Part shown: positions 3,799 through 47,225 of the stretch, one piece after another | How the letters are laid out: each line of letters starts with the position of its first letter | Position numbering within the stretch: position 1 is the first letter of the stretch | NCBI GenBank assembly: GCA_024704765.1 | Contig: JAKMXF010000051.1 | Location: 1 to 47,225, forward strand | Reading direction: 5' to 3' | DNA from: Oopsacas minuta | Taxonomy: Eukaryota > Animalia > Porifera | Length of the DNA stretch: 47,225 nucleotides | Notes under the pieces: model-generated | What the model saw: only the letters and a program-made list of their open reading frames with translations | What the model was told of the DNA's origin: nothing | Databases searched by the model: none | Made by a program: the position numbers and the translations under genes

Positions 3799-5086
3799 AT
3801 GGCAGAACGTAGTAACACCTCTCCCCTCCTCATCTCTTCGAGTGGTTCAGATTCTGAAACGTTCCCATTTCCTGAACTAACACCTCTCGAAGCTCCTCCT
3901 CAGATCGACCCCCCTGAGAAGAACAAGAAGGTACAGGACATGTTGTCACTAGTCGATCAGTACTGTGACACTGACGGTCTGTCTAGCGAGGCTATAGCAC
4001 TTTTAGGCGCCATTCCAGACGGATACACGCCAGTTCCTCACCAAATGGGCGGACACAAACATGTCAACGGAAAACCGGGTTTGGAATGTTAATAATAATT
4101 TGCTAAATATTCTGTAAATTTTATTTGTTTATTTTAATAGGATTTCTAAGGAAAATTGGAACTCCAGAATTTCTCTACAAACCTGTCCAACCTTTCCCGA
4201 AAGGAATCAGAGAATTAAACTTTTATAACTTCTTACAAACACCTGAACTAACTTCTGAAGTTCTCCAGCTCAAGAAATTCCTCCCTAAATTCTACGGAAC
4301 ACAAATAATCCCTCCAAAGACGAGTGATGGAGTTATTTGTATGTTGTTTGTTTGTTTGTTTGTTTGTTTGTTTGTTATCTCTTCCTTCTTAGCTGAATAT
4401 TTCCGTTTGGAGGACTGTGCTCATCCTTTCAAGAAGCCCTCGATCTTAGATCTTAAGATCGGTAAGAAGGTCTGTGAGCAAGGTAGTGCTGAGAATAAAA
4501 TAATTCGATCTGTAGAGAAGTATCCAGTACAAGATTCTATCGGATTCAGAATTGTTGGAATGAGAGTTAGTAAATTTTCATTCCTTAAGTATTTGTTATT
4601 TATTTGTATACTTGTTTACTTTAGGTGTATAAAACACTCACTGATGATTACAAGTACTACAACAGATGTTATGGTATGACACGTCTGGATAAAGAATCTG
4701 TTCATCAAGGTAAACGCCTATAGCTTATTTGTTTATTTATTTATTTGTAAACCCATCTTATCTTTGTGTTGCTAGGAATGTTGGATTTCCTTGACAACGG
4801 AACTGAAATAAGGTATGATCTAGTTCCTAGCATTATTGAGAAAGTAACAGAAATCAAAAACTGGTTTGCCGCTCAGACAACTTTTAAACTCTTCGCCACC
4901 TCAATTCTTCTCATTTATGAAGGCTCTCAGACACCAGGTGTTGACAGATCAAGGGTAGACATCCGATTGGTCGATTTTGCACACGCCTATTTCTCCTCAG
5001 AAGTAATGGATTTGGGTCCAAATTGTGAATTTGGCGCCAAACAGGTGTTGGAGCATTTTAGAATAATCAAAGAGTCTCAGTTTTGA
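3799..5086 (+). CDS. Inositol polyphosphate kinase (IPMK/IP6K-like), paralog 2, 348 aa
   Basis: join(3799..4078,4141..4338,4393..4565,4625..4709,4776..5086) = 1047 nt in frame. Motifs PHQMGGH, PSILDLKIG, TSILLIYEG, LVDFAH. The 173-nt and 85-nt exons match paralog 1 exactly in size. Confidence 0.9.
4763..4984 (+). repeat. 222-bp near-identical direct repeat, copy B (IPK paralog 2)
   Basis: Matches 3281..3502 except attattaag/attattgag (K/E) and gttgat/gttgac (synonymous). Confidence 0.95.
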
Positions 5087-5222
5087 TTGGTTGTCTCTTT
5101 TTATGGAATTTTTCAATTTATATATTTGTTTGTTTTGTTTAGTTTTATTTTCTTAGTTTTTACTTTTCTTTATTTTTTCGCGCATTTAATATTTCCATAT
5201 TTTATACAATAGAATAGCTTTG

Positions 5223-8129
5223 ATGTATTCCACAAACAGAATTACAACCCGTAAGGATGCGCGTCGAATCCAGAATCATCTGGACTCACTTCGTAGCAGA
5301 GAGAGGATTAGTGTTACTAGGAATTCCTCACTTTTAGCCGATATTTGTCGCCTAAAGAGACAGGTTCAAAGCATGAATGTTTCTGTGAACCGGTTGGAGA
5401 GAGCCCGCGGCAACTATGATCGATATGTGCAGACCTGTATGGTCAGCCTTGTCCAGAAGTCATTTCGGGAAACCGGAACTGATAATTTACTTAGTTCCGG
5501 TACAAAACTGGAACCAAATCAAACAGATCACCTTACTCCTACCAAAACTATCGGAGTCCAAACGTCTCTTGAGCAGACATCAACCCATATATCTGATTGG
5601 TCAATATCTCCAGACTCTCTCATGCACTCTACTATGTTAGCTCCAGATGTGTCGGATAAGCTGCCACCTCGCGACACACCGAAACGACATAATTATATGT
5701 CTCATCACCCCAAACCACCTGTAGACATGTCAAGCTTAGTTCCTCCGGTCATTAACTTCTCAGATCTACGGACTCCTATTGTTCCACTTCAGGACACATT
5801 TTCAACACCTTTACACGGCTCAGTTCCTAGAGTAATTGTGCCACCTGAATCTTCTATACCAATAGAATTACCGACCATTTCCACACCTCTATTTGCACAA
5901 CAAAATACATTCCAATCTCTTTCTAACGTATCTATGATTCCTCAAACTTACTTGGCTCTTCCACATTCCTACGTGTTGTCACAACAACCTGTGGGTTACC
6001 CCAACCAACCTTTTCAACCCTCTGAAATTATATCTGCCACTTCTCTGCATCCTGTATCATCTCCTGCCACTTTCCAGATTTCTGTATCATCTCCTTCCAC
6101 TTCCCAGTTACCTGTGCCATCTCCAGCCACTTCTCTGCATCCTGTGCCATCTCCTGCCACTTTCCAGATACCTGTACCATCTGCCATTTCTCAGTTAGCT
6201 ATACCATCTTCTGCCACTCCCCAGTTACCTGTGCCATCTCCTGCCACTTCTCAGTTAGCTGTACCATCTCCAGCCACTTCTCTGCATCCTGTGCCATCTC
6301 CTGTCACTTTCCAGATACCTGTACCATCTTCTGCCACTTCCCAGTTACCTGTGCCACCTCCGACCACTTCTCTGCATCCTGTGCCATCTCCTGCCACTTC
6401 CCAGTTACCTGTGCCATCTCCAGCCACTTCTGAATTCTCAAGCTTTGTCCAATTTCCTGAAACCTCAAAATCTCCAGTCTTAGAAGCAACCCAACCACTT
6501 GAGTTATGTGAAACGGAATTAACTACTTTTCACACTTTGCAGGGTCCTATATCTGGGGACACATCTAGACACCAAATGGCTCAGACAATCCGCCACTCCG
6601 ACACAATTCCTCAAAGAATTAAATCTCCTCCACCTCCTCCTAAACATTCTCTTCTTTCTCCTTCAAAGCCTGCCACACAAATTCTTGAGTTACAAACACA
6701 ATTTTCACACTCCCGCCAGTCTAGCTCCCTGCCCACAATTCCAGAACCAGATGAGCCACTATTTGAGCCACCTTCTGATAAACAACCACCTGTAACCATC
6801 CTTAACAACTCTGTGGGGATGCATCGCGTTCCCAGCGCTCACGAATTTGCTCTTCACCATCTCGACAACTTGGACAGAAGATCCAGTATTGATATTGGTG
6901 ACAGATCTGGCATAGTCCTGAAATCCACCAATAGTGACACTCATAAATCAGAGAATGATTTGGATACCGACAGTTCCGGTCCTGAAAGGATTTCACACCT
7001 CAAGAGCACGCCCAACCAGTTCGACCTTACAGCACTTTTGGTATTGGAAAGTGGCTCAGATGAAGAATTTAGACGAAAACCTAGTCAGGTAATGGCAGAA
7101 TTTGCCAATAATCAGCAGACACGTGACCACTTTATTATTCTTAATAACTTGGCTGTCACTCTTAATAAATTGTGTCTTAACACTACACCAGGTGGTGCTA
7201 GAATATATGGTGCGATTTCTCAAATCGACACATTTAAGCCACAAATATCAGAGTCGAATGTTGTCACCAGCAAGATTGAGTCACAGGCTGCCACTTCTGA
7301 GATGGCACAGTTAGCCACTTGGGATATGCAAGCTTTGGGAAATGTGTTTCTTTCCGAAATCACAAAATTGACACTTCAGAATGGCGCAATTTTGAATTCC
7401 GAAATTCTCTCAAAAGAAGAAATTAATTTGGATTCTTTCAATAATAATTTGCCTTTCGTCAATAAACGAATTTGGAATTGTCTGCTCGGACACTTCTCCG
7501 CACTTTTGCAAGCTAAAATGTCAGTCGAAGACATTTGTGCCACATTTGTGCCATTTTTAGTTGAGCCACTTTCTTCTAATGATCATCTCAAAACTGCCAA
7601 TAAAATTTTGCTCAGAATTCTTTCTGAGATATTTGATTTGAAAGAAACGACACCAAACAATGTGGAACCAAGTTTAAGTTTCAGTTCTGATTTGAATTCA
7701 GAGTCTTTCAAGGAAGATGCATACCAACACCTTTTGAAGAGTATGGCACTAGAAGCTAAAGATGGAGGTGTTAAAAGTGGCATACAAGACGACATACTCT
7801 CTGCTCCAAGTTCTCTAGTTAGTGATGAATCAGTCAAGCAGGATTTTAACGCGGGAATAAATTCTAAAAGTTGTGAAGAGTCTCCGACACAATTACTGGA
7901 ACAAGCTGTCCGCGAGGAGTCTCAATCTGACTCAAGTGATTCTGATGTGGTTGAGGACATTTATGTGCCATCTTTCGCACCTTCTAAGTTGATGAGTGAT
8001 CGCGAAAAGAAAACTAAATTTGAGAAGTTTTGGGGATCAGATTTGGACTCTGACGGATCGGAATCGGAACCTATGAGAAGTGTCAAAAGGAAGACAAGCA
8101 AAGGTGTGGACGAATTTGACTTTTTTTGA
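5223..8129 (+). CDS. Large intronless Ser/Pro-rich protein (968 aa from first ATG) with N-terminal coiled coil and internal decapeptide repeats; possibly Kizuna-like centrosomal protein
   Basis: Uninterrupted ORF; ATG at 5223 follows the TTG given in the track. The Kizuna resemblance is from memory only: an N-terminal RERISVTRNSSLL helix and a C-terminal FWG-acidic...DEFDFF tail. Confidence 0.75.
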   Translation: MYSTNRITTRKDARRIQNHLDSLRSRERISVTRNSSLLADICRLKRQVQSMNVSVNRLERARGNYDRYVQTCMVSLVQKSFRETGTDNLLSSGTKLEPNQTDHLTPTKTIGVQTSLEQTSTHISDWSISPDSLMHSTMLAPDVSDKLPPRDTPKRHNYMSHHPKPPVDMSSLVPPVINFSDLRTPIVPLQDTFSTPLHGSVPRVIVPPESSIPIELPTISTPLFAQQNTFQSLSNVSMIPQTYLALPHSYVLSQQPVGYPNQPFQPSEIISATSLHPVSSPATFQISVSSPSTSQLPVPSPATSLHPVPSPATFQIPVPSAISQLAIPSSATPQLPVPSPATSQLAVPSPATSLHPVPSPVTFQIPVPSSATSQLPVPPPTTSLHPVPSPATSQLPVPSPATSEFSSFVQFPETSKSPVLEATQPLELCETELTTFHTLQGPISGDTSRHQMAQTIRHSDTIPQRIKSPPPPPKHSLLSPSKPATQILELQTQFSHSRQSSSLPTIPEPDEPLFEPPSDKQPPVTILNNSVGMHRVPSAHEFALHHLDNLDRRSSIDIGDRSGIVLKSTNSDTHKSENDLDTDSSGPERISHLKSTPNQFDLTALLVLESGSDEEFRRKPSQVMAEFANNQQTRDHFIILNNLAVTLNKLCLNTTPGGARIYGAISQIDTFKPQISESNVVTSKIESQAATSEMAQLATWDMQALGNVFLSEITKLTLQNGAILNSEILSKEEINLDSFNNNLPFVNKRIWNCLLGHFSALLQAKMSVEDICATFVPFLVEPLSSNDHLKTANKILLRILSEIFDLKETTPNNVEPSLSFSSDLNSESFKEDAYQHLLKSMALEAKDGGVKSGIQDDILSAPSSLVSDESVKQDFNAGINSKSCEESPTQLLEQAVREESQSDSSDSDVVEDIYVPSFAPSKLMSDREKKTKFEKFWGSDLDSDGSESEPMRSVKRKTSKGVDEFDFF
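6033..6431 (+). repeat. Coding 30-nt minisatellite (about 13 units of P-A-T-S-x-x-P-V-P-S) with 90-nt higher-order period
   Basis: Repeated ctgccacttc...cctgtgccatctc. Unit variants cycle SLH/FQI/SQL; one unit is 27 nt. Confidence 0.92.
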
Positions 8130-8788: not shown

Positions 8789-9919
8789 ATGTTACATTTT
8801 CTGAAGCAGTTTAAGATTGTTCAGCTCTACTTGACATACATTTTGGTGTTTGCTTGTATTTCGTGTACGATCGGTCAGATTATCGCATTTCCACTCAAAT
8901 ACATTAGTCCTCGATTATTCTACGTCCTTAACGATAAATTGTGCTATTGCTATTTCTGTCTGATACCCTATGCGGTAGAGAACTGGGGTGGGTACACTAT
9001 TAGAGTATACGGGAAAGATGGAATTTACCAAACATTCGAGAAATCGCGAAATAAGAACATGCTAGTTGTTATGAACCACACTGGAGAAGTTGATTGGATG
9101 ATTGGATGGAGTCTTATCGAGAGGGTCGGTCTCTTGGGAGTTGTTAAAACTATGATTAAAGACTCCGTCAAGTATGTCCCAGTATTTGGTTGGAGCTTTT
9201 ACTTCTCTGACTACATTTTCGTGAAGAGATCTGCTCAGACTGATCTCCCACTCATCAAGAAGGCATGTGACGTATACAAGAAGTATCCCTACAATTTCCT
9301 GATGACGATATTTCCTGAGGGGACCCGCTTCACGAGGGAGAAGCATTCAGAGAGTCTAGCGTTCGCTTGTAAGAGAGACCTCCCTCAGTACAAGCACCAT
9401 TTATTGCCCCGAGCTAAAGGTCTTTACACTCTTGTCTGTATGATGAAGAATAACGATAACTCTGAATTCTTCTACGATGTGGAATTTGCTTACAGAGGGA
9501 AAGAGGCAACCACTTTAGGTATCCTGTCAGGTGACGCAGGGATGTGTGACGTCAATATGAGACTGATTCCTCTCCGTGACATTCCATTAGAGGAGAAGGC
9601 GTTTAGTGAATGGCTCTATCAGCTTTTCAGGGAGAAGGATGAGCTGATGGAGTATCACCTGAAGCACGGATGTTTCCCGGGTATGCATCTGCAAGCGGAC
9701 CAGGGATACTGGAGATCTAAACTGGCATTATTCTGGTCCTTGGTCAGTACCCTCCCTATTCTGAGTCTCCTCTATTGTCTAATCTCAAGTGAACAGTGGA
9801 TTATTGTGGCATTCCTTATCGGATTAGTTCCGATTGCCAGCTGGATGTTTAAACAGCTGATTCACCTGACAGAGTCCAAACACGGTTCATCCTACGGTCT
9901 TAATAATAAGAAAGTTTAA
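8789..9919 (+). CDS. 1-acyl-glycerol-3-phosphate acyltransferase, AGPAT3/AGPAT4 family, intronless, 376 aa
   Basis: NHTGEVDW (HxxxxD), GWSFYFSDYIFVKR, IFPEGTRFT, LLPRAKG; hydrophobic N- and C-terminal segments. Confidence 0.92.
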   Translation: MLHFLKQFKIVQLYLTYILVFACISCTIGQIIAFPLKYISPRLFYVLNDKLCYCYFCLIPYAVENWGGYTIRVYGKDGIYQTFEKSRNKNMLVVMNHTGEVDWMIGWSLIERVGLLGVVKTMIKDSVKYVPVFGWSFYFSDYIFVKRSAQTDLPLIKKACDVYKKYPYNFLMTIFPEGTRFTREKHSESLAFACKRDLPQYKHHLLPRAKGLYTLVCMMKNNDNSEFFYDVEFAYRGKEATTLGILSGDAGMCDVNMRLIPLRDIPLEEKAFSEWLYQLFREKDELMEYHLKHGCFPGMHLQADQGYWRSKLALFWSLVSTLPILSLLYCLISSEQWIIVAFLIGLVPIASWMFKQLIHLTESKHGSSYGLNNKKV

Positions 9920-9980
9920 TAGTTGGTAAGAGAGTACATTTTATTATTTATTATACAACTAAGCTAACTGACAAACTATT

Positions 9981-10235
9981 CTACGTTTCTAACACCAGTT
10001 TATCAATTGCGTACATTTCATTCAGTTTAGTCTGTCTTTCTAATAGTTTTATACTAGCCATTGCTTGCGAATGAAGTTTTGACACCTTTTCTAATTCTGT
10101 CACAGATTTGTTGTCCCTGAATCTGTCCCTGATCCGTCGCTTGGCGTACTCTCTGTAATTGTAAATTGTGAAATCAGTTGATAGTCTCAGCAGTCTGCGA
10201 TAAGTGGCGAGCAATTGTGTCCTTGTTAGCGACAT
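9981..10235 (-). CDS. LYRM4: LYR-motif protein 4 (ISD11, Fe-S cluster assembly), 84 aa
   Basis: LATYRRLLR (LYR motif), YNYREYAKRRIRDRFR and C-terminal ERQTKLNEMYAIDKLVLE are typical of ISD11/LYRM4. Confidence 0.9.
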   Translation of the reverse strand: MSLTRTQLLATYRRLLRLSTDFTIYNYREYAKRRIRDRFRDNKSVTELEKVSKLHSQAMASIKLLERQTKLNEMYAIDKLVLET

Positions 10236-10348
10236 TTTTATAGCAATTAATAATCCAAATTTGATGTTTGAAATTTTTATTCATAAACTAATGGTTGAGT
10301 ATTAATACAATTATTTGTGAGTAAAGTTAGAATATTTCTGTCACTAAA

Positions 10349-11443
10349 ATGGCTGAAGCAAAACACCCAAACTATCCTGACCTATCAAAGCACAACAACT
10401 GGATGTCTAGATGTATGACTAATGAGATCTATACCCAGCTGGCCGGCGTCAAGACTAACACCGGCTATACTCTAGACGAGGCTATCCAGACTGGAGTAGA
10501 CAATCCGGGACATCCCTTTATCATGACGGTAGGCTGTGTGGCTGGAGATGAGGACACATATAAGGCATTTGCTCCATTATTAGATGAAATAATAGAGAAG
10601 AGACACGGAGGCTACAGCAAGACTGCTACGCATACCACTGACCTGAATCCTGCTAACATCAAAGGAGACGGACAGTTCGATCCGAATTATGTGCTCAGTA
10701 GTCGTGTCCGCACCGGCAGGAGTATTCGGGGGTACTGTCTGCCTCCTGCATGTAATCGGGGTGAGCGTAGAGCAGTCGAGGAAATACTCATAAAAGCTCT
10801 GGGAGCTCTATCCGGCGATTTTTCTGGGAAATATTACCCACTCAAGAACATGAGTAACGAGGAGCAGGAACAGCTGATCAATGACCACTTGCTCTTCGAT
10901 AAACCGGTCTCTCCACTGCTACTGGCATCAGGAATGGCGCGAGATTGGCCGGACGGACGTGGTATCTGGCATAACGAGAAGAAGAACTTTCTAATCTGGG
11001 TAAATGAGGAGGATCATATGCGCATAATATCCATGCAGCTAGGTGGTGACATGATGGAGGTGTTCAAGAGATGGTGTGAGGGTCTCAAGCTGGTGGAGGA
11101 TGGGATCAAGAACCTCGCTGGGAAGGAGTACATGCATAACGAACATCTAGGGTACATACTAACTTGCCCTTCTAATCTTGGGACAGGAATGCGAGCTGGT
11201 GTTCATGTGAAACTCCCAAACCTATCCAAACACGCCAAATTCGGAGATATTGTGGATAATTTGAGGCTCCAGAAGAGAGGAACTGGTGGCGTGGACACTG
11301 CTGCTGAAGGAGGAGTGTTTGATATCAGTAACAGAGATCGTCTAGGATCCTCAGAGGTGGAACAGATACAAACAGTCCTGGACGGAGTTACCCAGCTAAT
11401 CAATCTTGAAAAGAAATTGGAGAAAGGAGAGTCTATCGATTAA
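10349..11443 (+). CDS. Creatine kinase (phosphagen kinase), single-domain, intronless, 364 aa
   Basis: [26 protein letters not shown] (creatine-type specificity loop), [30 protein letters not shown]. Confidence 0.95.
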
Positions 11444-11602: not shown

Positions 11603-13622
11603 ATGACATCACTAGATGATCCTGTTGTGCGTAGTTACGAGGTGTTTGTATCACAAGCCCTTAACGATCAGCTGTTTGTTCTACAACACCCCACAAGACC
11701 CGCTTTCCTTCCCTTCGGTTCTGATCAGGTCCTATCCGTTAAAAATAAGCCCAATCAGAACAGACTCCAGCTGGAGTACAAGGTTACAAACTCTGACAAT
11801 CCAGCCCGTTTCTGTCCAATTAAATCCCAGTTAGCAAAAGGTGTGAAAATCTGTATATTCTTGTGTGAATATATATTTATATTTGCTATATAGAGCAATC
11901 AGATGATGTTGTAGATACACGAACACCTAGTTACTTACTGACCTCTGAGCCTGGTGTTGTGACTGGGGATCACTATGCAGTGGCAGTCCTGAAAGACAAC
12001 ACACTCCACCTGAACCCTCTGGAGTATGTTGTTCAGATGAGACCAGATATGTCACGCACTTTTGGCAAGAATATTCCTCTCAAGAAGCAACCAGAAACTG
12101 ATGAAGGTTAGTTAGTTCCACTTTATAACACCTCTTATTTCCGTATTTATCGAGGTGTTAGAAATGGAAGGTGACATCGTGCCACTTCAGATGAGAGTGG
12201 CTCGTCCATCATTCAATCAGGAACGAACCAATCAGCGTAAGAGGGAGCGACAGGACCAAGAGGAGGCCTGGGTGCCCCTGGGATATAATGAGTTCTCCAG
12301 CGGAACAGCTGGTTATCTCAGAAGTCTCCTATTCGGTGATGTAGTAGAAAAATCAGCTGGAAATAGACCAATCAGTAACGAGGAATATTTGGAACACCTC
12401 GCCCAGATTTCTAGACAAGTTGACAGATCTTTGGTGAGAAAATATTGATATATTTTGTAAACAATAATACTAACAAATTTGTTTATTTACAGGTGACAAC
12501 TACTCCAGTCAATAGCTCGTTAGACAGAGAGATCAGAAATAAACCAATCAAAGATCAGCTCTTGCATATTCTCAGGAAAGTAGCTGGAAAATGTGTCAAA
12601 TTTTCCTACGTACATGCGTTGCTAGGCAACCAATTCTCAGTTGAGAATTTGCTTAAAGGTCTTCAACAAATATCCCTGTTGGTTCAGGGATGGTTCGTGC
12701 TAATGTCTAGTGAGTTGTACCCTCTGACAGGTGACAACTCCTCTAAAGTGGACCCCTTGGAGCTGAGAAGGTGTCGTGATTTTGTTTTGTCTCATTATGC
12801 CCTCTACAAATTCTTGGAGAAACAAAACACATTCCATTTGTTAGGAATTCCAATCGAAGACTTCAATGAAATATTTGTTCCAATTTCTAGTTTCTATTTA
12901 AGAGGGAAACACTCCTTTAAATATTTGGAAGATAGGAATTTCATTAAGGAACATTTGGATATCTGTACCCAACATTCTGACAAATGGAAACAGGTTATTA
13001 TTGTTTACTTGTTTGTTGTTTTGTTTATTTATTATATTATTGATAGATTTATGAAACTATTCGGAAACATTACAAACTGGATCAGCCCTCTGAGACCCCC
13101 TCTCCCTCAAAAGTGTCCCTCACTGTAACTAACACCTCAAACAAGAAAAGAGCTAAATCTGATTCAGGAATTGACAATAATTCCGTCCGTCAGCTGTTAG
13201 GAAAATCTCCAATAATTTTTCAAACTTTGAAAAATAAAATTTCGATTTTGTACGAAAAAGTTAAACAAGAAAATTCAGAAATTTCAAATCTTTTCCAAAA
13301 CTCAGAAATGTTCGATCAAGTTTTGCGCACAATTCTGCAAGAGATTAACGCCGCAATTATTGAAATCCCCGCCTCTTCTGTAGCTAAAAATAGAATTATT
13401 GTAGTTGCCCGAGAGACTGACTCACCCAGTGACTCATACAGGATGGCACTAATCAGCTGTTTGGAGGTAAAGCCAGTCCAAAAGCGCCAAGAATTAATCG
13501 CCTCATTCAAGAAATCTGTCAAATCTCTTCCAACCAATTTAGACATTAACGAAATAATTCTTGATTTGTGTGACGTCACAGGAAGCAGCTGTAAGATCAA
13601 AGGATTGGATTCTGAATTATAA
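11603..13622 (+). CDS. POLR3E: RNA polymerase III subunit RPC5, 599 aa
   Basis: join(11603..11840,11894..12106,12162..12433,12493..12993,13047..13622) = 1800 nt in frame, introns 53/55/59/53 nt. DDPVVRSYEVFVSQAL...LQHPTRP and YAVAVLKDNTLHLNPLEYVVQMRP match the Sin/RPC5 N-terminal domain. Confidence 0.85.
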
Positions 13623-13697
13623 TTGGTTACTTATTCTGTGTGTTTGTTTGTTTGTTTTTACATGTTTGTTGTTTTGAGTTTAATTAGAATTTATTTG

Positions 13698-15803: not shown

Positions 15804-15934
15804 ATTATTCATATGCTTAACTTGTTAATTACTAGAATTGATCTTAGAATTATTTGCTCAAATCGGAACTAATTAGAATATATCAGAGGTGTTAAATGTA
15901 TAATATTATCTATACCTTTATGCCCTAGCAACCA

Positions 15935-33850: not shown

Positions 33851-34930
33851 ATGGAAAATTCGAACAATTTTATTATAGCAGGAAACCAGGTAAAGTTTGT
33901 TTGTTTGTTTGTTTATTTGTTTGTTTATTTATTTGTTTACAGCTGATCTGTGCGGGGATGGACCACCAGTGTGTGCCACCGGATCTAGGTGGCAGATTTG
34001 GTGGCACAATTAATCGTCTGGATTTCAGTTACAACCAATTAAGGTATGTGTTTTTCTAAAAATAGAATAAATATTATTATTAATAATAATTTAGAGAGAT
34101 TTCCAATTTGGAAGCATTTTCACACCTCAAAGAGCTCGTACTGGACAATAATGTTATTACAGATGGCGGGTTTGATCTGCCACAAATGCCACAATTAGAG
34201 CTGCTATCTCTAAACAAAAATAAGGTAAGATGACACATTCTAACAGATCATGACATGTTTTAAATAATATTATAAAACAGCTGGAAGATCTGGATGTAGT
34301 CCTCTCTAAAATTCGTAAGAACTGTCCAGACCTGAGTTACCTAAGTCTCCTTGGGAACATAGCTTGTCCCTCAGAGCTCCTCGGGGGAGAAGAGGACGAG
34401 AACGATTACCAAAGATACAGGTGACGAAATTGTGGCACTCATAAATCAGGTGTTATAATTGTGTCGCTGTAGATACTTCGTGTTGTACCAGATGCCACAT
34501 TTGAGATTCTTGGACTCAAGAGCAGTAACGTCATCTGAACTTAAGGAGGCTAAGAGGGTTGGCGCATACACCAAAATAGTTAAACCATCTGTCCACATGG
34601 TGAGTGTGCCACTCTGCCACTTAACACCTTTTGGATATTTATTCTATTTGTAGTACGCTAAGACTCAAGCAGTAGGGACACCAGTAAAGGAGGCATTCTC
34701 ACCTCTGCCACCTAGTGGAGAGCAGACACCAAGCGCCAAAGGTATGAAATGTATTAATATTATAAAATAAGTGGTTTGAGACACTTTGTTCTTGACAAAA
34801 GTGGCTCAAATTGCTCTATAAATATCTCATAACCTCTCTTATTTCCATAGCAACGTTTGGGAAGTGCAAATATGTGTATTATGGGAAGCACTCGGAAGGT
34901 AACAGATTTATAAGAGACAGACATCTGTGA
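33851..34930 (+). CDS. LRMDA: Leucine-rich melanocyte differentiation-associated protein (C10orf11), 7 exons, 234 aa
   Basis: join(33851..33889,33943..34043,34095..34224,34281..34420,34473..34599,34654..34741,34851..34930) = 705 nt in frame. [43 protein letters not shown], and C-terminal [20 protein letters not shown]. Confidence 0.9.
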
Positions 34931-35164: not shown

Positions 35165-37526
35165 CTAATCGTAGGCTAGTTCCGGATACATCTGCACCCT
35201 GTAGTGGTACAGGATCTCATAACGGACCCACTTCTCCGCCTTGCGGTCTATTTTTAGAGCTCTGATAGATAGACCAGATGAGGAACCAGGGACAGTATAA
35301 TCCACCTCAGCACATAACTCCATCCCGCTAGGATTCTGCATGCCAGCTCTGAAATCAACTTCACACATAAAGTTGTACTGAAAGGTTGAGTGTTGATATG
35401 TTCCTATCTCCCAGACAACGGCACCTAGCTCAGGAATGTATTTAGCTTGTCCAGCTGATGTAGTGACACGACAGGAATTTGACTTGACATTCCTCCGTAA
35501 GGACCCCCGGGCGCTGGAGCGGACACTTTTCTTCCCAAATTTAGTTTCAGCGCTAAATGCGTTCCTCCAAGAGGGAGGGATGGGGAACTTCAAAATTAAG
35601 TTTTTGATTGGCTTAGCTCTGAGATTCATTCTTCTACGCACGTAAATGGCGCTTGAAATATATATCGTGTTATCTCTGAATTCTAGGAGAGCGGACACAT
35701 GTACAGGTGGCAGCAAATGTGGCTCTACTGTACACCTATAGATAATATAGCATTATTAAACCACTAGCAATGTGTTAAGTGGTGCAAACCTTAGGAGTTC
35801 GAATCTAGCTCCATCTACAGGAAAGAACACAATATCTCTGCTGTCTCTAAACTGTTGTGTATCTACACATGGATGTATCTCTGGTCTCTCCATGTGTACA
35901 GGTTTAGATATACCAGTTGTTAGCAGAGAGCTGTTACCTAGAGTATTCATATGATTAGTCATATATCCACACCTATATACGACAATATGAACTGTGAATT
36001 TGTTGTACTTATCACATATTTAACACCATGGATGACAGTTCTATAAAGACCATTTGTGTACCTGTCTGCTTGAGTATAGATTCGACATCATTGAGTAGGA
36101 GGCGACACTCCGGTGCTCCTGTCAGGTAGGCCTGTACCATAATTCTATTCTGTGATTGTCTCTCCAGAACAGCCCCGTCACTACTCATAATTATATTAGC
36201 ATGATCCTTAACGTCAACAAACACCTAACAAATAAACAGTAATAATATGTTTAAGGTGTTAAAATGTGAATATACCCTCCTACCTCGTTAGCATGATAAG
36301 CTACTCCCTGTTGTCTAGATACTGGTAGCTTCCTTATGGCGTTATGGAATGCTTCTTGGAATTCTTTCAGCTGATTGAGATCTCTAAATCCAAACTTGCA
36401 TACCGTTAGTCTCCTAGTTACGTGTTCGTACATAAAGAATCTGCGGAATGTTCTTTTCTCCAAATAAGACGTCTATATTAATAGGATAATATTATTCTCT
36501 GTTAACCAATCAAATTCTAGAGTTTACCTGTTGTAACTTAATTTGTGTAATTTTGGCGCCAATTTCAAATCGTTTATTGATTGGTTCAGACAGTGAGTGG
36601 AGGTGTTGGAGAATTATGTCCTTAAACACGTCAGGATCATCCAATCGTCCTGACACAGGGAGAGCGTGTATGGACTCACGAATAGAAATGATCCCATCCT
36701 CCACGGAGAGGAACACAGGGAACCAATTAGTCAGAGCTCTAGTGGGTCTGTTACGTAACTTAACATGTACATTCCATTGTGTCGGTGCTGTATGTGTATC
36801 GGTTGCTATGGTAGCATTGTGTCCTCTCTTGAGGAGTTCTGTGTCGTCATAGGAACTTGGAGGTTGTGTCTGCATGTGTCGCTGTCTTATACGGACACTT
36901 TGTGACCTACGGAAGGGTAACTCTCCCGTGTGTGTGTGCTCAACAGAGGCGTGAAGTGATTTATAGTCAGGGAGACTGGAACTATCCGAGGGGGACATCT
37001 GTTGTGACGATATAGCCAACCAATTGCTACCCCTGTATAACAGCTGTAATATATTTGTTGCTATTAATAGTAACAATAACTTACGTAGAATTTGGTGTCT
37101 GTGCCACTTCAATCTCAGAGAGGTGTTTGTGAGGAGGAGGGGGTGCTTGTCTAACAGGAGGTTTGTTGGAGTGAGGAGATTTAGGAAAGGGGAGATCTTC
37201 AAATCCTTCCCAAGAGCGTCTCATGCTAGGTGTCGTAGAAGTTGATAAATTGTCCTCTTCCAGCAGATTGCCTACATTTATACATATATTATACAGCTAA
37301 TTCATTGGTTAATATATCAACCCACTGATTTGATAATTAATCAAAAGATTACTATACATTCCTGAAGAGATATCCCTAGCAACTAACCTGGAATTCCTTT
37401 AGGCTTAACAGTAGTGTCAATACCGTCAACAGCTGGTTGAAAGGGTAGTTCTGGTTCTGATTTGTTTCCTTGTGAGAAAGGCAGTATTTGTCTGGACACA
37501 TAAGAATATGGCATTTTCCCATCCAT
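35165..37526 (-). CDS. Stonin-family endocytic adaptor with mu-homology domain, 7 exons, about 651 aa
   Basis: Exons 37526-37388, 37271-37085, 37032-36528, 36472-36284, 36224-36062, 35991-35790, 35735-35165 = 1956 nt in frame. SWEGFEDL (WxxF), EKRTFRRFFMYEH, KFPIPPSWRNAF, AKYIPELGAVVW, EKWVRYEILYHYRV. The exon 6 acceptor is the least certain boundary. Confidence 0.8.
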
Positions 37527-37660: not shown

Positions 37661-38371
37661 CGAAATCTAGGCAAGAATGTTAATAATTGTTAGTGTCATA
37701 TTATATATGAATTTAAATGCAGAGTTCTTATGAAACGTGTATACATATTAACCAATCAAATGATTGGTTTCTTCTAAATATAGTCTTCTTAAAATCATAT
37801 TATTAAACACATTCCTGTCTATGATTCCGTAACTAGGATTATGACTACGTGTAGAATTGTGTATTATAGTGGCAGGGTGGTATATATATTGTGTCGAGGG
37901 ACACTTTGTGGATAAAAGGAACATACATTAAGATCCGTATACACAATTATAGCACAAATGTGTCGAATAATTAATCTAATTAGTGATTTATTAACCAATA
38001 AGATTAAAGCATAATTCTTATCTAACGATTCATTGGTTAATATATTTTAGCTTAAAACAGACACAAAATGGGCCATGTGGTACATGGCGACACAATCCAC
38101 TTAGCCAGGTGGCAGGTTATTAATTTGTCCACTTTTAAGTTGTATGATTCGATAATTTAATTATGACGTCATAACATTATTTCCTTATAGCTTCGATCTT
38201 GTGACACAATTGTGCCACTTGTATAATTTCCTATTGTGTCGCTTTTAGAAGATAACTTATAATTTGTGTTCTGAAGCCTTGGAGATTATTGGTCAAATGA
38301 TTTGTAATGATTAGTATATGAACTCTACAAATTGTGTCGAAAAGAGGACACAATTGAGAAGTGGCAGAGTG

Positions 38372-38489: not shown

Positions 38490-39434
38490 CTACTTTGAAT
38501 TGGAACCATTCTTTAGTTCCAGTTTCGGTTTCGGTTTCAGATAAGTTTGATAGAAGAAATTGGCGAATAAAGCGCCATACGACACATAAATCAGGATTGA
38601 GATTTGTATCTTGAAGGAATCCGTGCCACATGTAACACCTTTGAGGAATGCTCGTATTGTGATTGTGTTAAATATGACACCTAAAACCATTTGGAAGAGC
38701 TGGAGGATTGTGACACATTTGTTCACAATTTTGGGAATTGGAATGTGTCCGTTAGCCCGCACAGCGTAGTAGGAGTACATAACAAAATGGACTATGTAAT
38801 TCATGAACCCAAACCAGAGACCTAAGAGGAGGTGTTAGATATATACATAAGGTGTTAGATATATACATATGATAAACTCACCACTAGAAGTAGGGTGTGC
38901 ATATGAGTACCAGCAGTACACAAACACAGTAATGTGATGGTACCAGTGTAGGAAGGAGAGCGGGGTCTTCCTGAGGACAATAAACGAGGTGTCAATTAAT
39001 TCCGGTAGCTTGGACAGGGGGAACAGGAACGCATACAATTTCTTACCCCTGACTCCCTTGTAGTAGGTAACGTCACAGAGGGCAGCTGTCCACCCGACCT
39101 TAAGGGGCTGCTCAAATATGTAGTCACTAATCCTCAAGAATGCTATGAGGGAGAAGAGGGAGAGGGAGAGAGACCAGAGGAACAGCGGTTTCCTGAGATC
39201 AAAGGGTCGTTTGTCTGTCATATATTTTCCTATCAGGAATATACACACGACGTAGATGAGTGACACATATATTGATACATGCCAATTCTGTCGCATCCAC
39301 TGGTTTACTTTTACGTCATCAAATGCCAACTCAATTGTGTCCAGACTTGTCAATAATGGCAGTTTATCCTGCCACTTGGGTAAATTCACATATGACAATA
39401 AATTCATGAATTTGAATCCAATTGAGTCTCCCAT
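38490..39434 (-). CDS. ELOVL6: Fatty acid elongase ELOVL6/ELOVL3 type, 294 aa
   Basis: Exons 39434-38882 and 38821-38490 = 885 nt, intron 60 nt. FDLRKPLFLWSLSL, SKLPELIDTSFIVLRK, FLHWYHH, MNYIVHFVMYSYYAVRA. Confidence 0.88.
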
Positions 39435-40252: not shown

Positions 40253-40315
40253 TTATCAGCTAATAAACACAAACAATAACAAATATATTATAGTTCCATA
40301 TACGAATAAATATCT

Positions 40316-43276
40316 TTAATTATTTGATTTATCTCTCTGCCACTTTTCTATCCTTTCCTTTAGTTCAGGTATTGGTTCCAGTTCTTCTATGCTTAATGGC
40401 TGTCTGGAAAAAGGATCGTTCTTTTGGTTCAATATGTGTCGCTCTATGGTGGCACGATCCACCACATTGCCAGATGGCAGGAGGATCGGATCAGACATTA
40501 AAGTGTTCATTAAAGCATCCAAGAATTCCTCAGGAATATTTTCTATTGAAATATTGTTGCATTCCAAAGTACGTTTTGTGTTGCTAAACTTACCACATAT
40601 CTCCTGCCACTTCTCCATCTTGTCAAAAGGTGCTTTAGCGACACCTAACACCTTCTGGGTGTTAATGAGAAGAGATTCCGAGTAACTCCGTCCGTCGCTA
40701 ACGACAGCAATCAGGAATGTGTCAAATTGAGCCATATTAAAATACACCTCTAGAATGTGGCACAGAAGGTCAAGTGGCTTAAAACTCAGCTGTTCCCGAT
40801 CTAACACATTTAGAGTTCTATTTTTAGGTCCAGTCAGCTGATTTAGGAAATAGTTCAACATCGTTGCTAAGGAATCTATCTGTACAGGAATTGTAAGTAT
40901 CTGAGGTGTCTCATGACTGATCCTCACTAAGGTGTGAATTGTCCTCTCTGCTAAGCGATTCATGGTACGAGCTAATCGGGTCTCTTGTCCCAATTCTGTA
41001 ATTTTAGAATTCTTTTCCTCTTCCGACAACTCATGCCACTTTGTCCCACTTTTAAGTTTCTCGATGACTGCCACATTTTGAACATGTGACAACCCTTCAT
41101 CCAATAGGAATGTGGCATCGTTAATTAGCGCGTTTAGGAATTTGAGGAGTACAGGTGGCGTAGAATATGTCCTATCTAACACCTCGCGACACAATGTGTC
41201 CAAACATGGCTTAAATGGCGCACTAGACCACAATAACTCAATCAAGTCATACATGGAGTGTCGATATGTGAATTTTTGTTCAAATTCTAAATCGTCACCT
41301 GTCACTTCTATCTCTGCAAACACCTTCAAAAGACCGGGCAAAAAGTGTCGCAGTGCCATGCGATCAGATTGGAGGGTTTCACGTATCCTGTCTGTATGTG
41401 ACACCAAAAAGTGTCGTGTGTCATTGTCAGAATGTGTCAGAGTACCTAACACCTCTGCTATCTTCCCTCTCTTATGAGGATTCAGTATTAAATCTGAGTT
41501 ATTAAGGAATACTGTAGAAAATTGGATAAACTTTGAATAATCTGGCTGAAGTGTCACTAATGTGTCCTTGCAGGTGGCAGAGAGGAACTGGAGAATCTCC
41601 AACACGTTGCTAAGGTAGAACTCAGGAATGCAGGCTATCTGAGGCGTCACTTTATGTTTAGTTCCGGTTAGAAACAAGAACCAATCGCATGAAAATAAAC
41701 AGAATTGTGTCAACATTTGGACAAGATTTTCACTCAAAAGGTGTGATTTTAGTGACAAATATGAGCCAATCAAATCCTCGTATGTGGCCTTCAAAAGTGG
41801 CTGATTTTCCAGAGTTGGCAGGATGTCTTTGATCTCTGCCAGTTGTCGCGATTTGTTAATAAAGGTGTCAATGACTGGCACATAATAAACACTCAAAGCA
41901 AAATGTGTCACATGAAATAATTGTGTCGGAAATGAGAAATCAGGAGACAAGTCTAAAATTAGATCTTCTGTGTCCTCGCAGTGACACAATTTGGATTCCT
42001 TACACAACTCAAGAATGTGAGGAACAGGAACTGAACTAGGATTAGTTCCAATTCTAGAAACAGCTGACTCAAAACTGGAATTATTCTCAATCAAACAATA
42101 AAATGAATTAATTTTACTCACAAGTTTTCCCTCACAAAGTTTTTGACAAAATTTTAATAACAAAGTTGTTACGTTTAAGCCCATTCCGTCAGTGGCATAA
42201 AGTGTTTGCTGAAAGGTGTTAGTTCTTAATTGTAGGCCCAGTGAGCCACGTGGGTGGTTCCGTTTTAAAAAGAGAGACAACCATAGGAATATGGAATGGG
42301 AATTATGTTTGAAAAGTGGTTTAAATGTTTGGTGTGCCACTTCACATAAAGTTGTTAATCTCTGGTTAAGCATGCCACACATTCCTTCAATAGAACTGGT
42401 TGTCAAGGTACTGGCATCCTTGAAATGGGAGGGATAGGTGTTGATAGGTGACACTCTGAAAAGTGGCCCTAAAATGGTTTTAAACTCAAAGTCAAGTGGC
42501 GTAGTTAAGCCTCTAAAATCAAGTAACATAGATGTGAACAGCTGAGCTATCCTAGCCACTGAAAAGAGGACAGAATATGGCACAAAGTGGCACGTGGGTA
42601 TCACATCCGGCGAGGTGTTAGAAATGAATGGCTCAGAAAACTTGAGAAGAATAGGTGTGAAAATTCGACACATTTCTTCATGAGATAATTGGCCAATAAG
42701 ATTAGTTAGAAATTCTAACGTCTGGGGAAGTGTGGCTCGCTCAGACACAAAATTCATGCGACACATTTTCATCACCTCTTCCCCTAGATCACTATTGGAA
42801 CCAGAAGTAACTGACCTAGCAACCGCAGAATGTACCAAAGGAATGCAATGGGTTCTAACGTCATAACTTTCAAGATAGGATAATCTCACAAAACAGCTGA
42901 AAAGATAATTAAGTGATGTCTGCTTTGTGCCACTTGACGCCTGTAAATACTCATTCAGTGCCACTTCTATATTAAACAACGAGAGCAGCGGGTGCCACAC
43001 GTAGACACCTTGATCCGATTGTGTCGCGGTATATGGCAGATATGTCACTTCCTTAGCAACCGTTTTGGGAGACAAATATTTGATATTTTTAAGGAATTTT
43101 CTGATATCTGGATGACACAAAGTGAAACCAAATGTGTCTTCAAGTGTCGCATTTAAACGAAGTGGCACGGTTGGAAAGTGAGTAGTTAACACCTTGAAAT
43201 TAGGCGGGTAATGTCTCTGAATCTCTAATTGTACTTTCGGGCAAAATCTCTTGAACGGATTCTCATCAGTTGCCAT
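40316..43276 (-). CDS. UBE4A: Ubiquitin conjugation factor E4 A (Ufd2 core plus U-box), intronless, 986 aa
   Basis: NPHKRGKIAEVL, KVFAEIEVTGD..FEQKFTYR, LINDATFLLDEGL, U-box PEEFLDALMNTLMSDPILLPSG...DPFSRQPL. Confidence 0.9.
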   Translation of the reverse strand: MATDENPFKRFCPKVQLEIQRHYPPNFKVLTTHFPTVPLRLNATLEDTFGFTLCHPDIRKFLKNIKYLSPKTVAKEVTYLPYTATQSDQGVYVWHPLLSLFNIEVALNEYLQASSGTKQTSLNYLFSCFVRLSYLESYDVRTHCIPLVHSAVARSVTSGSNSDLGEEVMKMCRMNFVSERATLPQTLEFLTNLIGQLSHEEMCRIFTPILLKFSEPFISNTSPDVIPTCHFVPYSVLFSVARIAQLFTSMLLDFRGLTTPLDFEFKTILGPLFRVSPINTYPSHFKDASTLTTSSIEGMCGMLNQRLTTLCEVAHQTFKPLFKHNSHSIFLWLSLFLKRNHPRGSLGLQLRTNTFQQTLYATDGMGLNVTTLLLKFCQKLCEGKLVSKINSFYCLIENNSSFESAVSRIGTNPSSVPVPHILELCKESKLCHCEDTEDLILDLSPDFSFPTQLFHVTHFALSVYYVPVIDTFINKSRQLAEIKDILPTLENQPLLKATYEDLIGSYLSLKSHLLSENLVQMLTQFCLFSCDWFLFLTGTKHKVTPQIACIPEFYLSNVLEILQFLSATCKDTLVTLQPDYSKFIQFSTVFLNNSDLILNPHKRGKIAEVLGTLTHSDNDTRHFLVSHTDRIRETLQSDRMALRHFLPGLLKVFAEIEVTGDDLEFEQKFTYRHSMYDLIELLWSSAPFKPCLDTLCREVLDRTYSTPPVLLKFLNALINDATFLLDEGLSHVQNVAVIEKLKSGTKWHELSEEEKNSKITELGQETRLARTMNRLAERTIHTLVRISHETPQILTIPVQIDSLATMLNYFLNQLTGPKNRTLNVLDREQLSFKPLDLLCHILEVYFNMAQFDTFLIAVVSDGRSYSESLLINTQKVLGVAKAPFDKMEKWQEICGKFSNTKRTLECNNISIENIPEEFLDALMNTLMSDPILLPSGNVVDRATIERHILNQKNDPFSRQPLSIEELEPIPELKERIEKWQRDKSNN

Positions 43277-43393: not shown

Positions 43394-45449
43394 TCAGCAA
43401 AGAGTTTCGACACTATTGAACCTGTTCAGAGGTGACAAGTGGTCGTGAGGAGTCGATGTGGTAGGAACAGAATCTACAAGGTGTGTGCTATAAAGAGATG
43501 AAAATTAATTAGAAGAAATAACTCACATTTTCTCTGTGTTGGTCCTGTTGATATCTCAGCTCTTATCAAGCTGTTATTCGTCAAGTGATCGGGTATCTAA
43601 ACAGAGTAGAGATTAATCATATTTTCACACCTCTACAGAGGGCATTACGGATCTTCCAGAACGTGCAGTCACAGTCAACTCCCGTAAGTAATATCGAAGC
43701 TGAAGGGACCACGATAATTATAACAGGAGTTTGATTAATATATCCATGGTTCATGTAATACCTTATCAGGGTTAGTAAAGGTGGGAGTAGATCCAACATC
43801 CCTAACATTCTTCTGCTCCATAGCAACGGATTTCCTCAATCCTGCATAAGGAATGCCATCAGGAAATCCTGTTCTATTTTTAGTATCACTTATACTACGA
43901 GGTTTGATTGGCTCAGGAGTTCTACTGAATAGAAATATTTAAATATTAGATAACACATTTGGTTGCTATGGTAACATACCTTGTTATAGGTGGTAAAGTG
44001 TCAGAGCAAGTCCGTGCCATTTCTTCAATATTGCTATAAATAGAATTGGAATGTGGCAGAGGTGGTTTTGTGGCACATTTCTGAAATGGCAAGTTTTCAT
44101 ACACATCATCTTGTCGAAGTGGCAGGGTGGTTGGTTTAATGTGTCGTTTGTTTGGCTTAGAAGTGGTATGATCTTGCGATACATTGGATTGGTTAGAGGG
44201 TTGTCTGTCAAATTGAGGCCTAATTGTGTCGCGCGACACATTTGACGCCCTTTTAATAGGGGAGCTAGTGAGAGGAACGCTTAGCTCTTTGAAAAGAGTT
44301 ATTTGTGGACTGTTAGAATGTGTCGCATGTGGCTGATACGACACACTAGTGCGGGATAGAGGTGACAACTCTCTTGGGGTAGAGGTCAAGTGGGAGGGTG
44401 CGCCAGAAGGTGTCAAGTGCTCAATTACTCCAATTTTACTCTTCCTCTTATCAACTTTACGACTTGATTGTCTGTTCTTTCTCTTAGGGCGATGACGGAA
44501 TAATCCCACAATCCCGCCTGAAAGTAAACAAATAAACAAACAAATAAACAAACAAACAAACAAACAAGCAGGCAAATAACTCACTTATAATTTTTCCAAA
44601 CACCTTGTCTTTCCGCTGTTCCATACCATCAGCCCTATTTGGTTGCCATTCTAGAGATTCATCTGATTGGTTAATTGAGGAATGTCCAGCAGATGCTAGT
44701 GAGTGTCTCTTAACGCGCGCAGTGGGCGGGATAACCCAGCTGGTAATATCAGGATTAAGATTCATACTCTGTGATAATAGCTTTATGCATTTCTTTTGTG
44801 TATTCTTGTCGTTATGGTAGATACAGTCCTGAGAGGCAGAGAGGGAGACCATGTCTGGGTCTACTGGGGTAGTGGATATGAATAAACGGGTAGATACAGG
44901 CGTTACTAGGGAGCGATGTGAGGTATGTGGCTTGTCTTCATCCGGGGTTATGAATTTCACAGGTTGGAATGTGTCATTCTCTGGAGTTATAAAGGCGTTA
45001 TTGCGTGGTCTATGTGGGGCACCATGAATATAATCTAGAGAATCCTGAGAAGTGTCATCTGCCATATTGTGTCGCGTAAGTGGCACGAAAGATGGCGCAA
45101 TTTCAGTATTCTGGAATGGGAGATTACAATAGACGGGAAATTGTGTCGGGGAGTGTAGCACCTCATAGTGACCGCTTTGACGTGGCACGGTCTCGTTAAG
45201 GGGTGTAGGCGCGGGCTGGTACGGGACATATCCGTAGCTAGACTCTGAAATCCGATTGGAGTCTCGGTTGCTAGGGTGCACCTGATGGAATGTGGAAGGA
45301 AGTGATTTTCTTTTATCAGAATTCTCTTCGATAAAATCGTGACTGAGTTTGTGAGAACTTCTGTATTTGAGTGACGGAAATGCATCTATTGCATTCTTTT
45401 GTCTCTCCATGGTAACCAGGTTGCGAGGTAATTGAGGAGAGTCTGACAT
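43394..45449 (-). CDS. Disordered Ser/Pro/Thr-rich protein with multiple tyrosine motifs (candidate docking/adaptor protein), about 588 aa
   Basis: Exons 45449-44585, 44517-43980, 43924-43762, 43699-43649, 43596-43527, 43473-43394 = 1767 nt in frame, introns 67/55/62/52/53 nt. Exons 1-2 are solid; the last four are chosen for frame and typical intron size. No folded domain recognised. Confidence 0.6.
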
Positions 45450-45555
45450 TCTAATTTTAGAATTTATAAATATTAGTTTACCAAAGGTGTGAAAAGTAAA
45501 TCACAAACAAACAAATATTTTAATTGCTAAAAGTGCGATTAGTTGCTTAACAAGA

Positions 45556-46898
45556 TCAAGTGGTCCTCCGTCCTCTAGGCAGAGGGGGAGCAAGGAACCC
45601 TGTGGTACTGGAGCCAGCTCGAGTGTAGGAGACAGTTTTAACGCCAGAACGTGTCAAATCAGAGGACACATTCTTGGTTGATTTACCGCGCCAATTCTTA
45701 ACGAATTTCTGTTTGGAATTTTTTCCATTTTTGAAATATTTTGATTTTGCTTTTCTAGAATATTCCACAGAATTTCTTATAGAATGTGACTGAGTGGTGT
45801 GTGTCACTAATGTGTCGGCCTGAGCTGCCAGAAACTGTCGCTTCAACTCACAGAACTTTGCTGTCACTTCCAAGAATGCCTCACCCTTGAACTTGTTCCA
45901 CTTAGACTCGGTTACCCCTGTAACAGCTAGGAATGTGGCACGTGTCTCAGGGGTGTTATAACTCATCTCTCTGAGGGTTGCCATATTGAAAATATTCTCA
46001 GGCGATAAGTCACAGTCCTCTGCCACCTGGTGGCGCAGAGTTCTCAGCTGATCCAGACACTCTGCGAAGTTTGGATACCCAGCTGTCTGTCCATTTGCAA
46101 TTTCATCATTCGTAGCATTCTTTTGCTTGCTTTTGGTTGCTATGATGGGTGAGCAACGGAAAAGTATTTTCTTAGTTTCTTTCAAAACCTAAAATTATAC
46201 TTTAAAATTGCTACTCATTCATAGTTCCAGTTGTTGTCACCTTTTCAGCTTCAGGACCTATTTTAACATAATTGAATACCCTGTCATGCAATCCTATATT
46301 CACTTGCTCCACTAACACCTCAGAGATGATCAGGAGGTGTAGAAACCTGTCAATATCTGTCCTACTTAATCCCCCAGATCTCCCGTACATAGGGAGGGTG
46401 TTGTAATTGGATTGGTACATCTTCTGACCCTGACACCCTCTAGAGAACAGCTGTGTTATATTTATTTTACAAACAAGATTAGCTCCTGAAATATAGGTGT
46501 ACACATATGGCGCCGTTAAGGTGCCACTTGTATTCATATATACATTTCGGTTCCATATTCAGTAGATAATTGAATTAGTGATCTCACAAACACAAACCAG
46601 ATTACAAATTCGTAGTTATTAACAGTTACCTGAATATGTCTGCCATCTGTATAAGTGTCAAATTAGAATGTGGCAAGAGTCTAACACTCAGGATTATATT
46701 TTGCGTCTCAGCTGTCATATCCTTCTCCATAATATCACCAGCTGATTTCTCACGACAATTGTCACAAGTCTTGCCGCATTCCTCAGCAGAGAACTCCTCA
46801 CCAAGGTAATTGAGTATTAATACTCTCCTACAGTCTGTCAAGTTCTCACAGAATGCCACCATCATGTGGAGGTTGTCAAAGTGGACACGGGCGACACT
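45556..46898 (-). CDS. BLM: RecQ helicase, Bloom-like: last three exons (Zn-binding RQC, winged helix, HRDC); 5' part outside the window or unresolved
   Basis: Exons 46898-46630, 46439-46241, 46188-45556 in frame. HFDNLHMMVAFCENLTDCRRVLILNYLGE...CDNC (RQC zinc site), and HRDC CLDQLRTLRHQVA...IFNMATLREMS...VTGVTESK. Confidence 0.8.
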
Positions 46899-47225
46899 CT
46901 AAATATAGATTGGCACATAAATGGTGTTAAGTCAGGTGGCTATATCCTCTCATGGACAACTGTCCCCTAAGGAAGAGTTGGAACATTAAACGGATCAATC
47001 CAAGCATACAACAAAAGGTGTGAAAAACAAACAAATTTATTAAATGGATATACTTCCTGAGGTGTTAAGCTCAAATTAAATAAGACACATTTGTAATAAA
47101 AGTGTATGGAATTAGAATTGTCTTTCAATTCTTGTGCCATTCATTAGATATGCCACATTCCTTGTGAGCTATCTGGTATCCTAGCAGAGCTATCTCTGTA
47201 AGAACTATGAGAAGTGTTAGATTAC

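Follow-up and report, generated by a model that had tools for sequence, protein, structure and literature searches.

This stretch of genomic DNA from the glass sponge Oopsacas minuta (contig JAKMXF010000051.1; 47,225 bp, with a guanine-plus-cytosine (GC) content of 39.3%), to be referred to as the window, raises the question of why a single octamer should recur in it so many times, on both strands and inside coding sequence. A preliminary description of this DNA had counted over 60 sites of AGGTGT(G/T)A (AGGTGTKA). The excess is confirmed. There are 68 such sites, made up of 19 copies of AGGTGTTA, 24 of TAACACCT, 14 of AGGTGTGA and 11 of TCACACCT. The minimum counts given earlier were 19 and 22 for the first two variants and at least 22 for the other two together (25 are present), and the earlier estimate of GC content, about 36%, was too low. 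Strand use is balanced, with 33 sites on the plus strand and 35 on the minus strand. The number expected from 100 dinucleotide-preserving shuffles of the window is 3.74 ± 1.96 (maximum 9), an excess of about 18-fold.

The word itself is broader than first described. The variant AGGTGTCA, with 21 sites in the window, is as strongly enriched as the T and G variants, and AGGTGTAA has no copy in the window. The actual word is therefore AGGTGTBA, with T, G or C at position 7 (AGGTGTKA together with AGGTGTCA; to be referred to as the T word). It is found at 89 sites, or about one per 530 bp. The octamer of the preliminary description is thus truly enriched but was drawn too narrowly, overlooking AGGTGTCA as well as roughly ten other words that are equally or more enriched (see below). 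Nearly all other single-base changes to the word reduce its count in the window to 0–10 copies. All 68 AGGTGTKA sites and 20 of the 21 AGGTGTCA sites are located between positions 3813 and 47067, on both strands, with the first AGGTGTKA at 3813 and the last at 47060-47067. The remaining AGGTGTCA-type site is outside this span, at position 1790 (as TGACACCT). The oriented logo of the aligned sites is R-AGGTGT-B-A-A-R-W, with a purine at position -1, an A-rich 3' flank (A in 57% of sites at +8 and in 43% at +9), and no information outside positions -2 to +11.

Codon-preserving shuffles, a 5th-order Markov background, a comparison with related species and conservation at synonymous sites had been named earlier as checks on the excess, and a single dispersed repeat as its possible trivial cause. 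In the 27 long open reading frames (ORFs) of the window (27.6 kb), synonymous codons were permuted within each ORF, preserving both the protein and its codon usage. The excess survives this treatment, as 32 sites are observed and the shuffles give 3.7 ± 1.8 (z = 15.8). Codon or dipeptide usage is rejected as the cause by the same comparison. The T word is present in real coding sequence, as had been claimed, with 10 of its sites in one intronless gene. When a 5th-order Markov model is trained on the window, it accounts for 28.9 of the 43 AGGTGTTA sites and so absorbs most of the excess, but as it is built from the hexamers of the word itself it is circular and does not serve as a separate background; with an order-3 model the predicted number is 4.9. 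Sequences flanking the 68 sites are mutually unrelated, and none of the repeat families in the window contains the T word. A dispersed repeat or transposon-derived motif, with copies that would share homologous flanks, is thereby ruled out. Two small tandem duplications (23281-23324 and 38830-38869) contribute one copy of the word each.

The intronless gene encodes a UBE4/Ufd2 ubiquitin ligase of 986 amino acids with Ufd2P_core and U-box domains (40316-43276, minus strand), and its ten AGGTGTBA sites lie in several frames and on both strands. A search with the UBE4 protein found seven orthologs with 60–75% identity, and their contigs provided seven syntenic loci (L001 to L007) from other glass sponges. 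Together with the window they represent four deep lineages: the window; L001, L002 and L007; L004, L005 and L006; and L003. All eight loci carry the same vocabulary, so that the earlier call for a comparison with related species has returned the same excess at each of the seven. In the pooled 197.8 kb, AGGTGTBA is found 355 times, as compared to 18.2 expected (19.5-fold; one per 557 bp). The enrichment is 20.4-fold for T, 20.5-fold for G and 17.5-fold for C at position 7, and 0.3-fold for A. Substitutions at positions 1–6 reduce the pooled counts from 140/116 to 0–31, and the single-base neighbors of the core stand at 0.2–1.2-fold of expectation. Microsatellite-like CAACAAC/GTTGTTG tracts are abundant in L003 (80 copies of AACAACAA) and in the L001 and L002 loci, and are not seen in the window.

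The orthologous ADCK5 loci of Corticium candelabrum and Sycon ciliatum, from two other sponge classes, served as outgroup controls. AGGTGTBA is found twice in 33.8 kb of the former and eight times in 27.5 kb of the latter, with about 5.6 expected for the two together, and the other enriched words of the glass sponges also show no excess at these two loci. Their GC content is similar. The excess at the loci of the seven relatives and its absence from Corticium and Sycon indicate a glass-sponge trait among the three sponge classes sampled.

The positions of individual sites are conserved as well. In a codon alignment of UBE4 from eight glass-sponge lineages, the AGGTGTTA site at 40646-40653 (minus strand, the sense strand of the gene, covering codons K-V-L) is kept in seven of the eight lineages. 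The AGGTGTGA site at 41739-41746 (plus strand, antisense to UBE4) is kept in six, and the AGGTGTTA site at 43187-43194 (minus strand) in five, including the most distant one, L003. Between representatives of the deep lineages, 44% of the T words in UBE4 are kept, as compared to 9.8% identity for other 8-mers. For segments with identical amino acids the values are 79% and 27% (Fisher p = 5e-17, inflated, as are the other conservation p-values, because species pairs share ancestry; the effect sizes are large), which bears out the synonymous-site conservation looked for earlier. A codon-matched test gives 76% and 52%. The ABC1/ADCK kinase gene (32090-33628), used as a replicate, shows the same effect with small numbers. 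In DNA without long ORFs, aligned between closer species, 64–83% of the T words are fully identical, as compared to about 25% expected from the background identity. Conservation at synonymous sites and outside ORFs points to the retention of individual sites. In 6 kb the contigs show 11 single-nucleotide polymorphisms, too few for a polymorphism test. One of them, a G>A change at 15889 in the contigs of runs X2 and X3, is inside the T word at 15887-15894, so that at least one copy of the word varies, either as a polymorphism or between the samples sequenced.

The T word is not a single special code, as the preliminary description had it, but one of roughly a dozen transcription-factor-like words that behave alike. 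Greedy word discovery, run on the window and independently on the related loci, finds AAGTGGCA, WTGTGTC(GC), CAGCTG(A), CCAATCA(G), TAGCAAC, TGGCGCC, GGAATGY, CTAWWWWTAG, TGACGTCA and TACGTTA (together with the T word, to be referred to as the lexicon). These words also resist codon shuffling, with z scores of 6–18. The lexicon accounts for 10.2% of the bases of the window, about 10–12% of the DNA across these loci and about 10% of exon bases. Most of its members match the consensus of an animal transcription-factor family: CAGCTG is an E-box, CCAATCA a CCAAT/NF-Y site, TAGCAAC RFX-like, TGGCGCC E2F-like, GGAATGY TEAD-like and CTAWWWWTAG MEF2-like, and there are bZIP words in addition. An extended form of the CCAAT word, TTAACCAATCA(A/T)AT, is located at 14511-14538, 22865-22892, 36497-36524 and 37743-37770, the first of these just upstream of an ORF at 14577.

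The word AAGTGGCA and its counterpart TGCCACTT are more enriched than the T word, with 54 copies in the window and 1.2 expected (for example at 6034-6431, 21546-21553 and 34615-34622). Just six of the 54 stem from a tandem repeat of 30 bp in coding sequence (6034-6431). In its extended form the logo of AAGTGGCA reads A-A-GTGGCA-S-A. It was considered as an NK2 homeodomain site and rejected, as the upstream T of the NKE consensus is missing. The word WTGTGTC(GC) (GCGACACAW on the opposite strand) is at least 12-fold enriched in the window and in L001 to L007 despite the CpG inside it, the ratio of observed to expected CpG in the window being 0.58, and it tends to cluster together with the GTGGCA word, with a Spearman coefficient of 0.45 over 500-bp bins. 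TTTGTTT, a possible Fox site, was removed from the lexicon, as its excess comes mostly from intronic (GTTT)n tracts. Tracts of (GTTT)n/(AAAC)n are found at 33882-33945, 17534-17700, 4329-4384 and 44519-44578, and some of them seemingly fill entire short introns (GTAAAG-(TTTG)n-TTTACAG).

Two of these words are also combined at a fixed offset. In the composite AGGTGTBAAGTGGCA the T word directly abuts AAGTGGCA. It accounts for 23 of 353 pooled T sites, and the window has four copies, at 21539-21553 (plus strand), 22801-22815, 24566-24580 and 34615-34629 (minus strand). At 27719-27736 (plus strand) the T word is followed 2 bp further on by ATTGTGTC, and the identical 18-mer is found again at 34448-34465.

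The window consists of closely packed genes, many with long exons, and the words are distributed unevenly among them. Adjacent genes differ several-fold in word density. The AGPAT ORF (8789-9919, plus strand) and the ATP:guanidino phosphotransferase ORF (10349-11443, plus strand) have no T word, and over the two together (8789-11443) words of any family number 2.6–2.7 per kb; most later ORFs have 9–23 per kb. The NHL-repeat gene (26149-27402, minus strand) is likewise free of the T word, and its relatives at the L001 and L003 loci are just as word-poor. These three ORFs, gelsolin and two others contain 0–1.8 T+G+C words per kb, as compared to 5–15 in most of the remaining ORFs. The ranking of genes is conserved across lineages, with UBE4 at 6–14 per kb, ABC1 at 4.5–8.4, NHL at 0–1.6 and AP-mu at 0–4.6. 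The word is thus patchy by gene and not evenly spread, and the differences between genes are held across lineages. Other genes of the window encode an M3 peptidase, a HEAT-repeat protein and a protein kinase.

The first 3.8 kb (1-3800), a region of tandem repeats and young paralogs, is devoid of AGGTGTKA and, apart from a single TGACACCT (the site at 1790), nearly free of lexicon words. The earlier claim that AGGTGTKA is absent from this region and from the AGPAT, creatine kinase (guanidino-kinase) and NHL coding regions holds. At its beginning are a 313-bp tandem repeat (1-916; 2.9 copies, 99% identical) and an array of 34-bp repeats (946-1177), both essentially without lexicon words.

Within the word-bearing DNA, the T words are scattered in a nearly Poisson manner. 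The coefficient of variation of the gaps is 1.19, the variance-to-mean ratio in 500-bp bins is 1.08, and the gaps fit an exponential distribution. The histogram of pair distances is flat, with no helical or nucleosomal periodicity and no enhancer-like clusters. No inverted-partner offset is enriched in the loci pooled together, and an inverted pair of T words with a 4-bp spacer at 16053-16072 does not reflect a general preference. The density of the T word is 1.7 per kb in ORFs and 2.2 per kb outside them. Because the sites are so dense, are equally present in exons and show no clustering, it was fair to say earlier that these are not ordinary enhancers.

Taken together, the binding-like specificity of the T word, the presence of other factor-type words, the positional conservation, the fixed-offset composite and the conserved gene densities suggest that the sites are retained for recognition by a protein. 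We place at about even probability the explanation that the AGGTGTBA sites are protein-binding words of the T-box type kept by selection. AGGTGTBA would be recognized by a DNA-binding protein with sequence specificity, most probably a factor of the T-domain (T-box) family, and individual copies would be held by selection in the exons, introns and spacers of glass-sponge genes, the word belonging with the others to a small lexicon of the transcription-factor type. Where the genome is very compact, intergenic bases are scarce and the factor repertoire is reduced, regulatory or chromatin-organizing sites may run through gene bodies as scattered single copies. Binding by a protein, the T-box identity of that protein and the function of the binding are what we infer from the DNA sequence.

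A T-domain protein appears to be the most economical candidate reader of the word. The consensus of the T-box half-site is AGGTGTGA(AA), and sites of the TBX5 type follow (A/G)GGTGT(C/T/G)(A/G). The identification with this half-site made in the preliminary description stands as regards the invariant GGTGT core, the G, T or C but not A at position 7, the purine at -1 and the A-rich 3' flank. It does not extend to the palindromes and clusters of known T-box targets, as the glass-sponge words are single, about one per 0.5 kb, and present in coding exons as well. A literature search on the octamers and sponges returned nothing relevant. A hexactinellid Brachyury was reportedly cloned by Manuel et al. 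in 2004. The O. minuta genome has a markedly reduced transcription-factor complement, and the regulatory consequences were left open (PMC10280926). The genome paper mentions neither T-box genes nor an excess of the word (PMC10280926), and the excess is also not mentioned in the Aphrocallistes genome paper.

Several points weigh against selection on T-box words. The nearly random, unclustered scatter is unlike known T-box enhancers, and in classical regulatory DNA one would not expect the sites to be nearly as dense within ORFs as elsewhere. The statistical support from conservation is weakened by the shared ancestry noted above. Moreover, selection and a persistent site-directed drive leave an identical footprint in these tests.

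Such a drive is the best surviving of the other explanations, and we consider it rather unlikely. A neutral biased process, either a sequence-specific bias in mutation, repair or gene conversion or the mutational protection of bound DNA, would make the words easily gained and rarely lost, with no regulatory function, and they would accumulate wherever selection does not oppose them. It would produce the scatter and the nearly equal coding and non-coding densities described above, and a persistent drive also predicts positional conservation. Variants that narrowly miss the word are rarer than expected (AGGTGTAA at 0.3-fold and a number of core variants at 0.2–0.4-fold), as if they had been converted, and the young DNA of the first 3.8 kb, with its tandem repeats and recent paralogs, is without words. 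However, roughly a dozen separate biases would be required, each matching a known factor consensus, and the several-fold differences between genes, conserved across deep lineages, would need extra assumptions about chromatin or expression if the process were uniform. We know of no precedent for such a sequence-specific drive in animals. Biased mutation or conversion, already listed in the preliminary description, keeps its place among the candidates but is less economical than selection on binding words.

It is also unlikely, in our assessment, that the words are bound by a protein outside the T-box family, such as a lineage-specific zinc-finger or architectural protein coating gene bodies. 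The likeness to T-box sites would then be coincidental, and the role would be chromatin organization or the licensing of self DNA. A scatter in gene bodies of single sites that form neither palindromes nor clusters differs from the known targets of T-box factors and would fit such a protein, as would the clade-specific nature of the excess. Neither AAGTGGCA nor WTGTGTCGC, the pair with the highest enrichment, could be assigned with confidence to a consensus, and both have the frame A-N-GTG-K in common with the T word. On the other hand, the profile of the T word, with B at position 7, R at -1 and an A-rich 3' flank, is close to the preferences of TBX5 and Brachyury.

A signal at the RNA level, by which the word would be enriched as a 5' splice site (AG/GTGTGA) or an exonic splicing signal, is very improbable. 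The spliced contigs of the RNA-like run X4 (12433-18014) contain five GT..AG introns of 48–59 nt, with the donors GTGAGA, GTTATT, GTGTGA (twice) and GTTAGT. AG/GTGTGA is thus the donor in two of the five introns found in this 6 kb. These are the AGGTGTGA sites at 13832-13839 (plus strand; donor at 13834, 54-nt intron) and 17957-17964 (plus strand; donor at 17959, 58-nt intron), two of the three donors proposed earlier, and both are borne out by the contigs; the third, at 11841, lies outside the 6 kb covered. However, at most six of the 89 AGGTGTBA sites are in the sense orientation with AT-rich sequence downstream, as candidate donors should be. Relative to the nearest gene, the word is common in either orientation, inside ORFs as well as outside, and within ORFs the antisense one is the more frequent (30 versus 15). 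The commonest variant is AGGTGTTA rather than the GTGTGA form, and the ten sites of the intronless UBE4 gene lie in several frames. The orientation of the sites and their presence in UBE4 indicate that splicing accounts for only a small part of the excess, and the RNA-level explanation is largely refuted by orientation. The 5' splice site is likewise rejected as the identity of the word, as apart from the two confirmed donors its copies are mostly antisense or deep in ORFs. The summed depth of the X4 contigs is 10–60 times higher over the 3' exons of the M3 peptidase gene (13701-15900) than over neighboring genes, such depth being a poor measure of expression.

That the excess is artefactual, arising from base composition, from codon or dipeptide usage or from a dispersed repeat, has next to no probability. 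The yield of the window-fitted 5th-order model would speak for such an artefact, but it is already refuted by the shuffles, by the order-3 model, by the uninformative flanks with just two sites added by tandem duplication, and by the outgroup sponges.

The words have only partial counterparts among known systems. Stergachis et al. reportedly described in 2013 exonic transcription-factor sites ('duons') by which the choice of codons is constrained. The glass-sponge words resemble these in being factor-type words in coding sequence with excess synonymous conservation (32 sites versus 3.7 by codon shuffle, 79% versus 27% kept, and the ABC1 replicate). In comparison, the effect here is far larger, with a single word reaching about 9-fold over the codon shuffle and the lexicon covering about 10% of exon bases, and is found in one animal class only.

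Bacterial genomes contain iterated words, including HIP1 of cyanobacteria, the DUS and USS uptake sequences and Chi. These are similar to the T word in being clade-specific, positionally conserved words of about 8 bp, found about once per 0.5–1 kb in coding and non-coding DNA. The present case differs from them in that it is an animal genome, with about a dozen words matching animal factor consensuses, no strand polarity (33 plus, 35 minus) and a gene-specific density. In C. elegans, periodic An/Tn clusters (PATCs) are found in germline-expressed genes. They too run through the bodies of certain genes and are absent from others, as a conserved property of the gene. PATCs, however, are periodic, intronic and of low complexity, whereas the glass-sponge words are specific 7–8-mers, without periodicity and in exons.

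A wider interpretation is possible, though we hold it only tentatively and regard it as somewhat doubtful. An exon-penetrating lexicon of about a dozen factor-type words, AGGTGTBA being one of the most frequent, scattered singly through particular genes, may have been selected in glass sponges for hundreds of millions of years. This would be an undescribed organization of an animal genome, a code for gene-body licensing or chromatin opening, suited to an animal with a syncytial body, a very compact genome and a reduced factor repertoire, rather than a set of classical promoters and enhancers.

Motif scans, gene finders, codon-usage analyses and analyses of nonsynonymous-to-synonymous substitution rates (dN/dS) in hexactinellids are biased unless the lexicon is modelled. 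The excess is very large, clade-specific and present in several public assemblies, and therefore either outcome can be tested. If mutational or conversion drive builds the words, an unknown sequence-specific force would be at work in an animal germline. If the words are bound and selected, they would be the clearest animal case of regulatory-type words overriding synonymous codon choice, and would offer a natural setting in which to ask how much sequence of the transcription-factor type coding DNA tolerates. They would also bear on how genes are regulated when intergenic DNA and the factor repertoire are both small.

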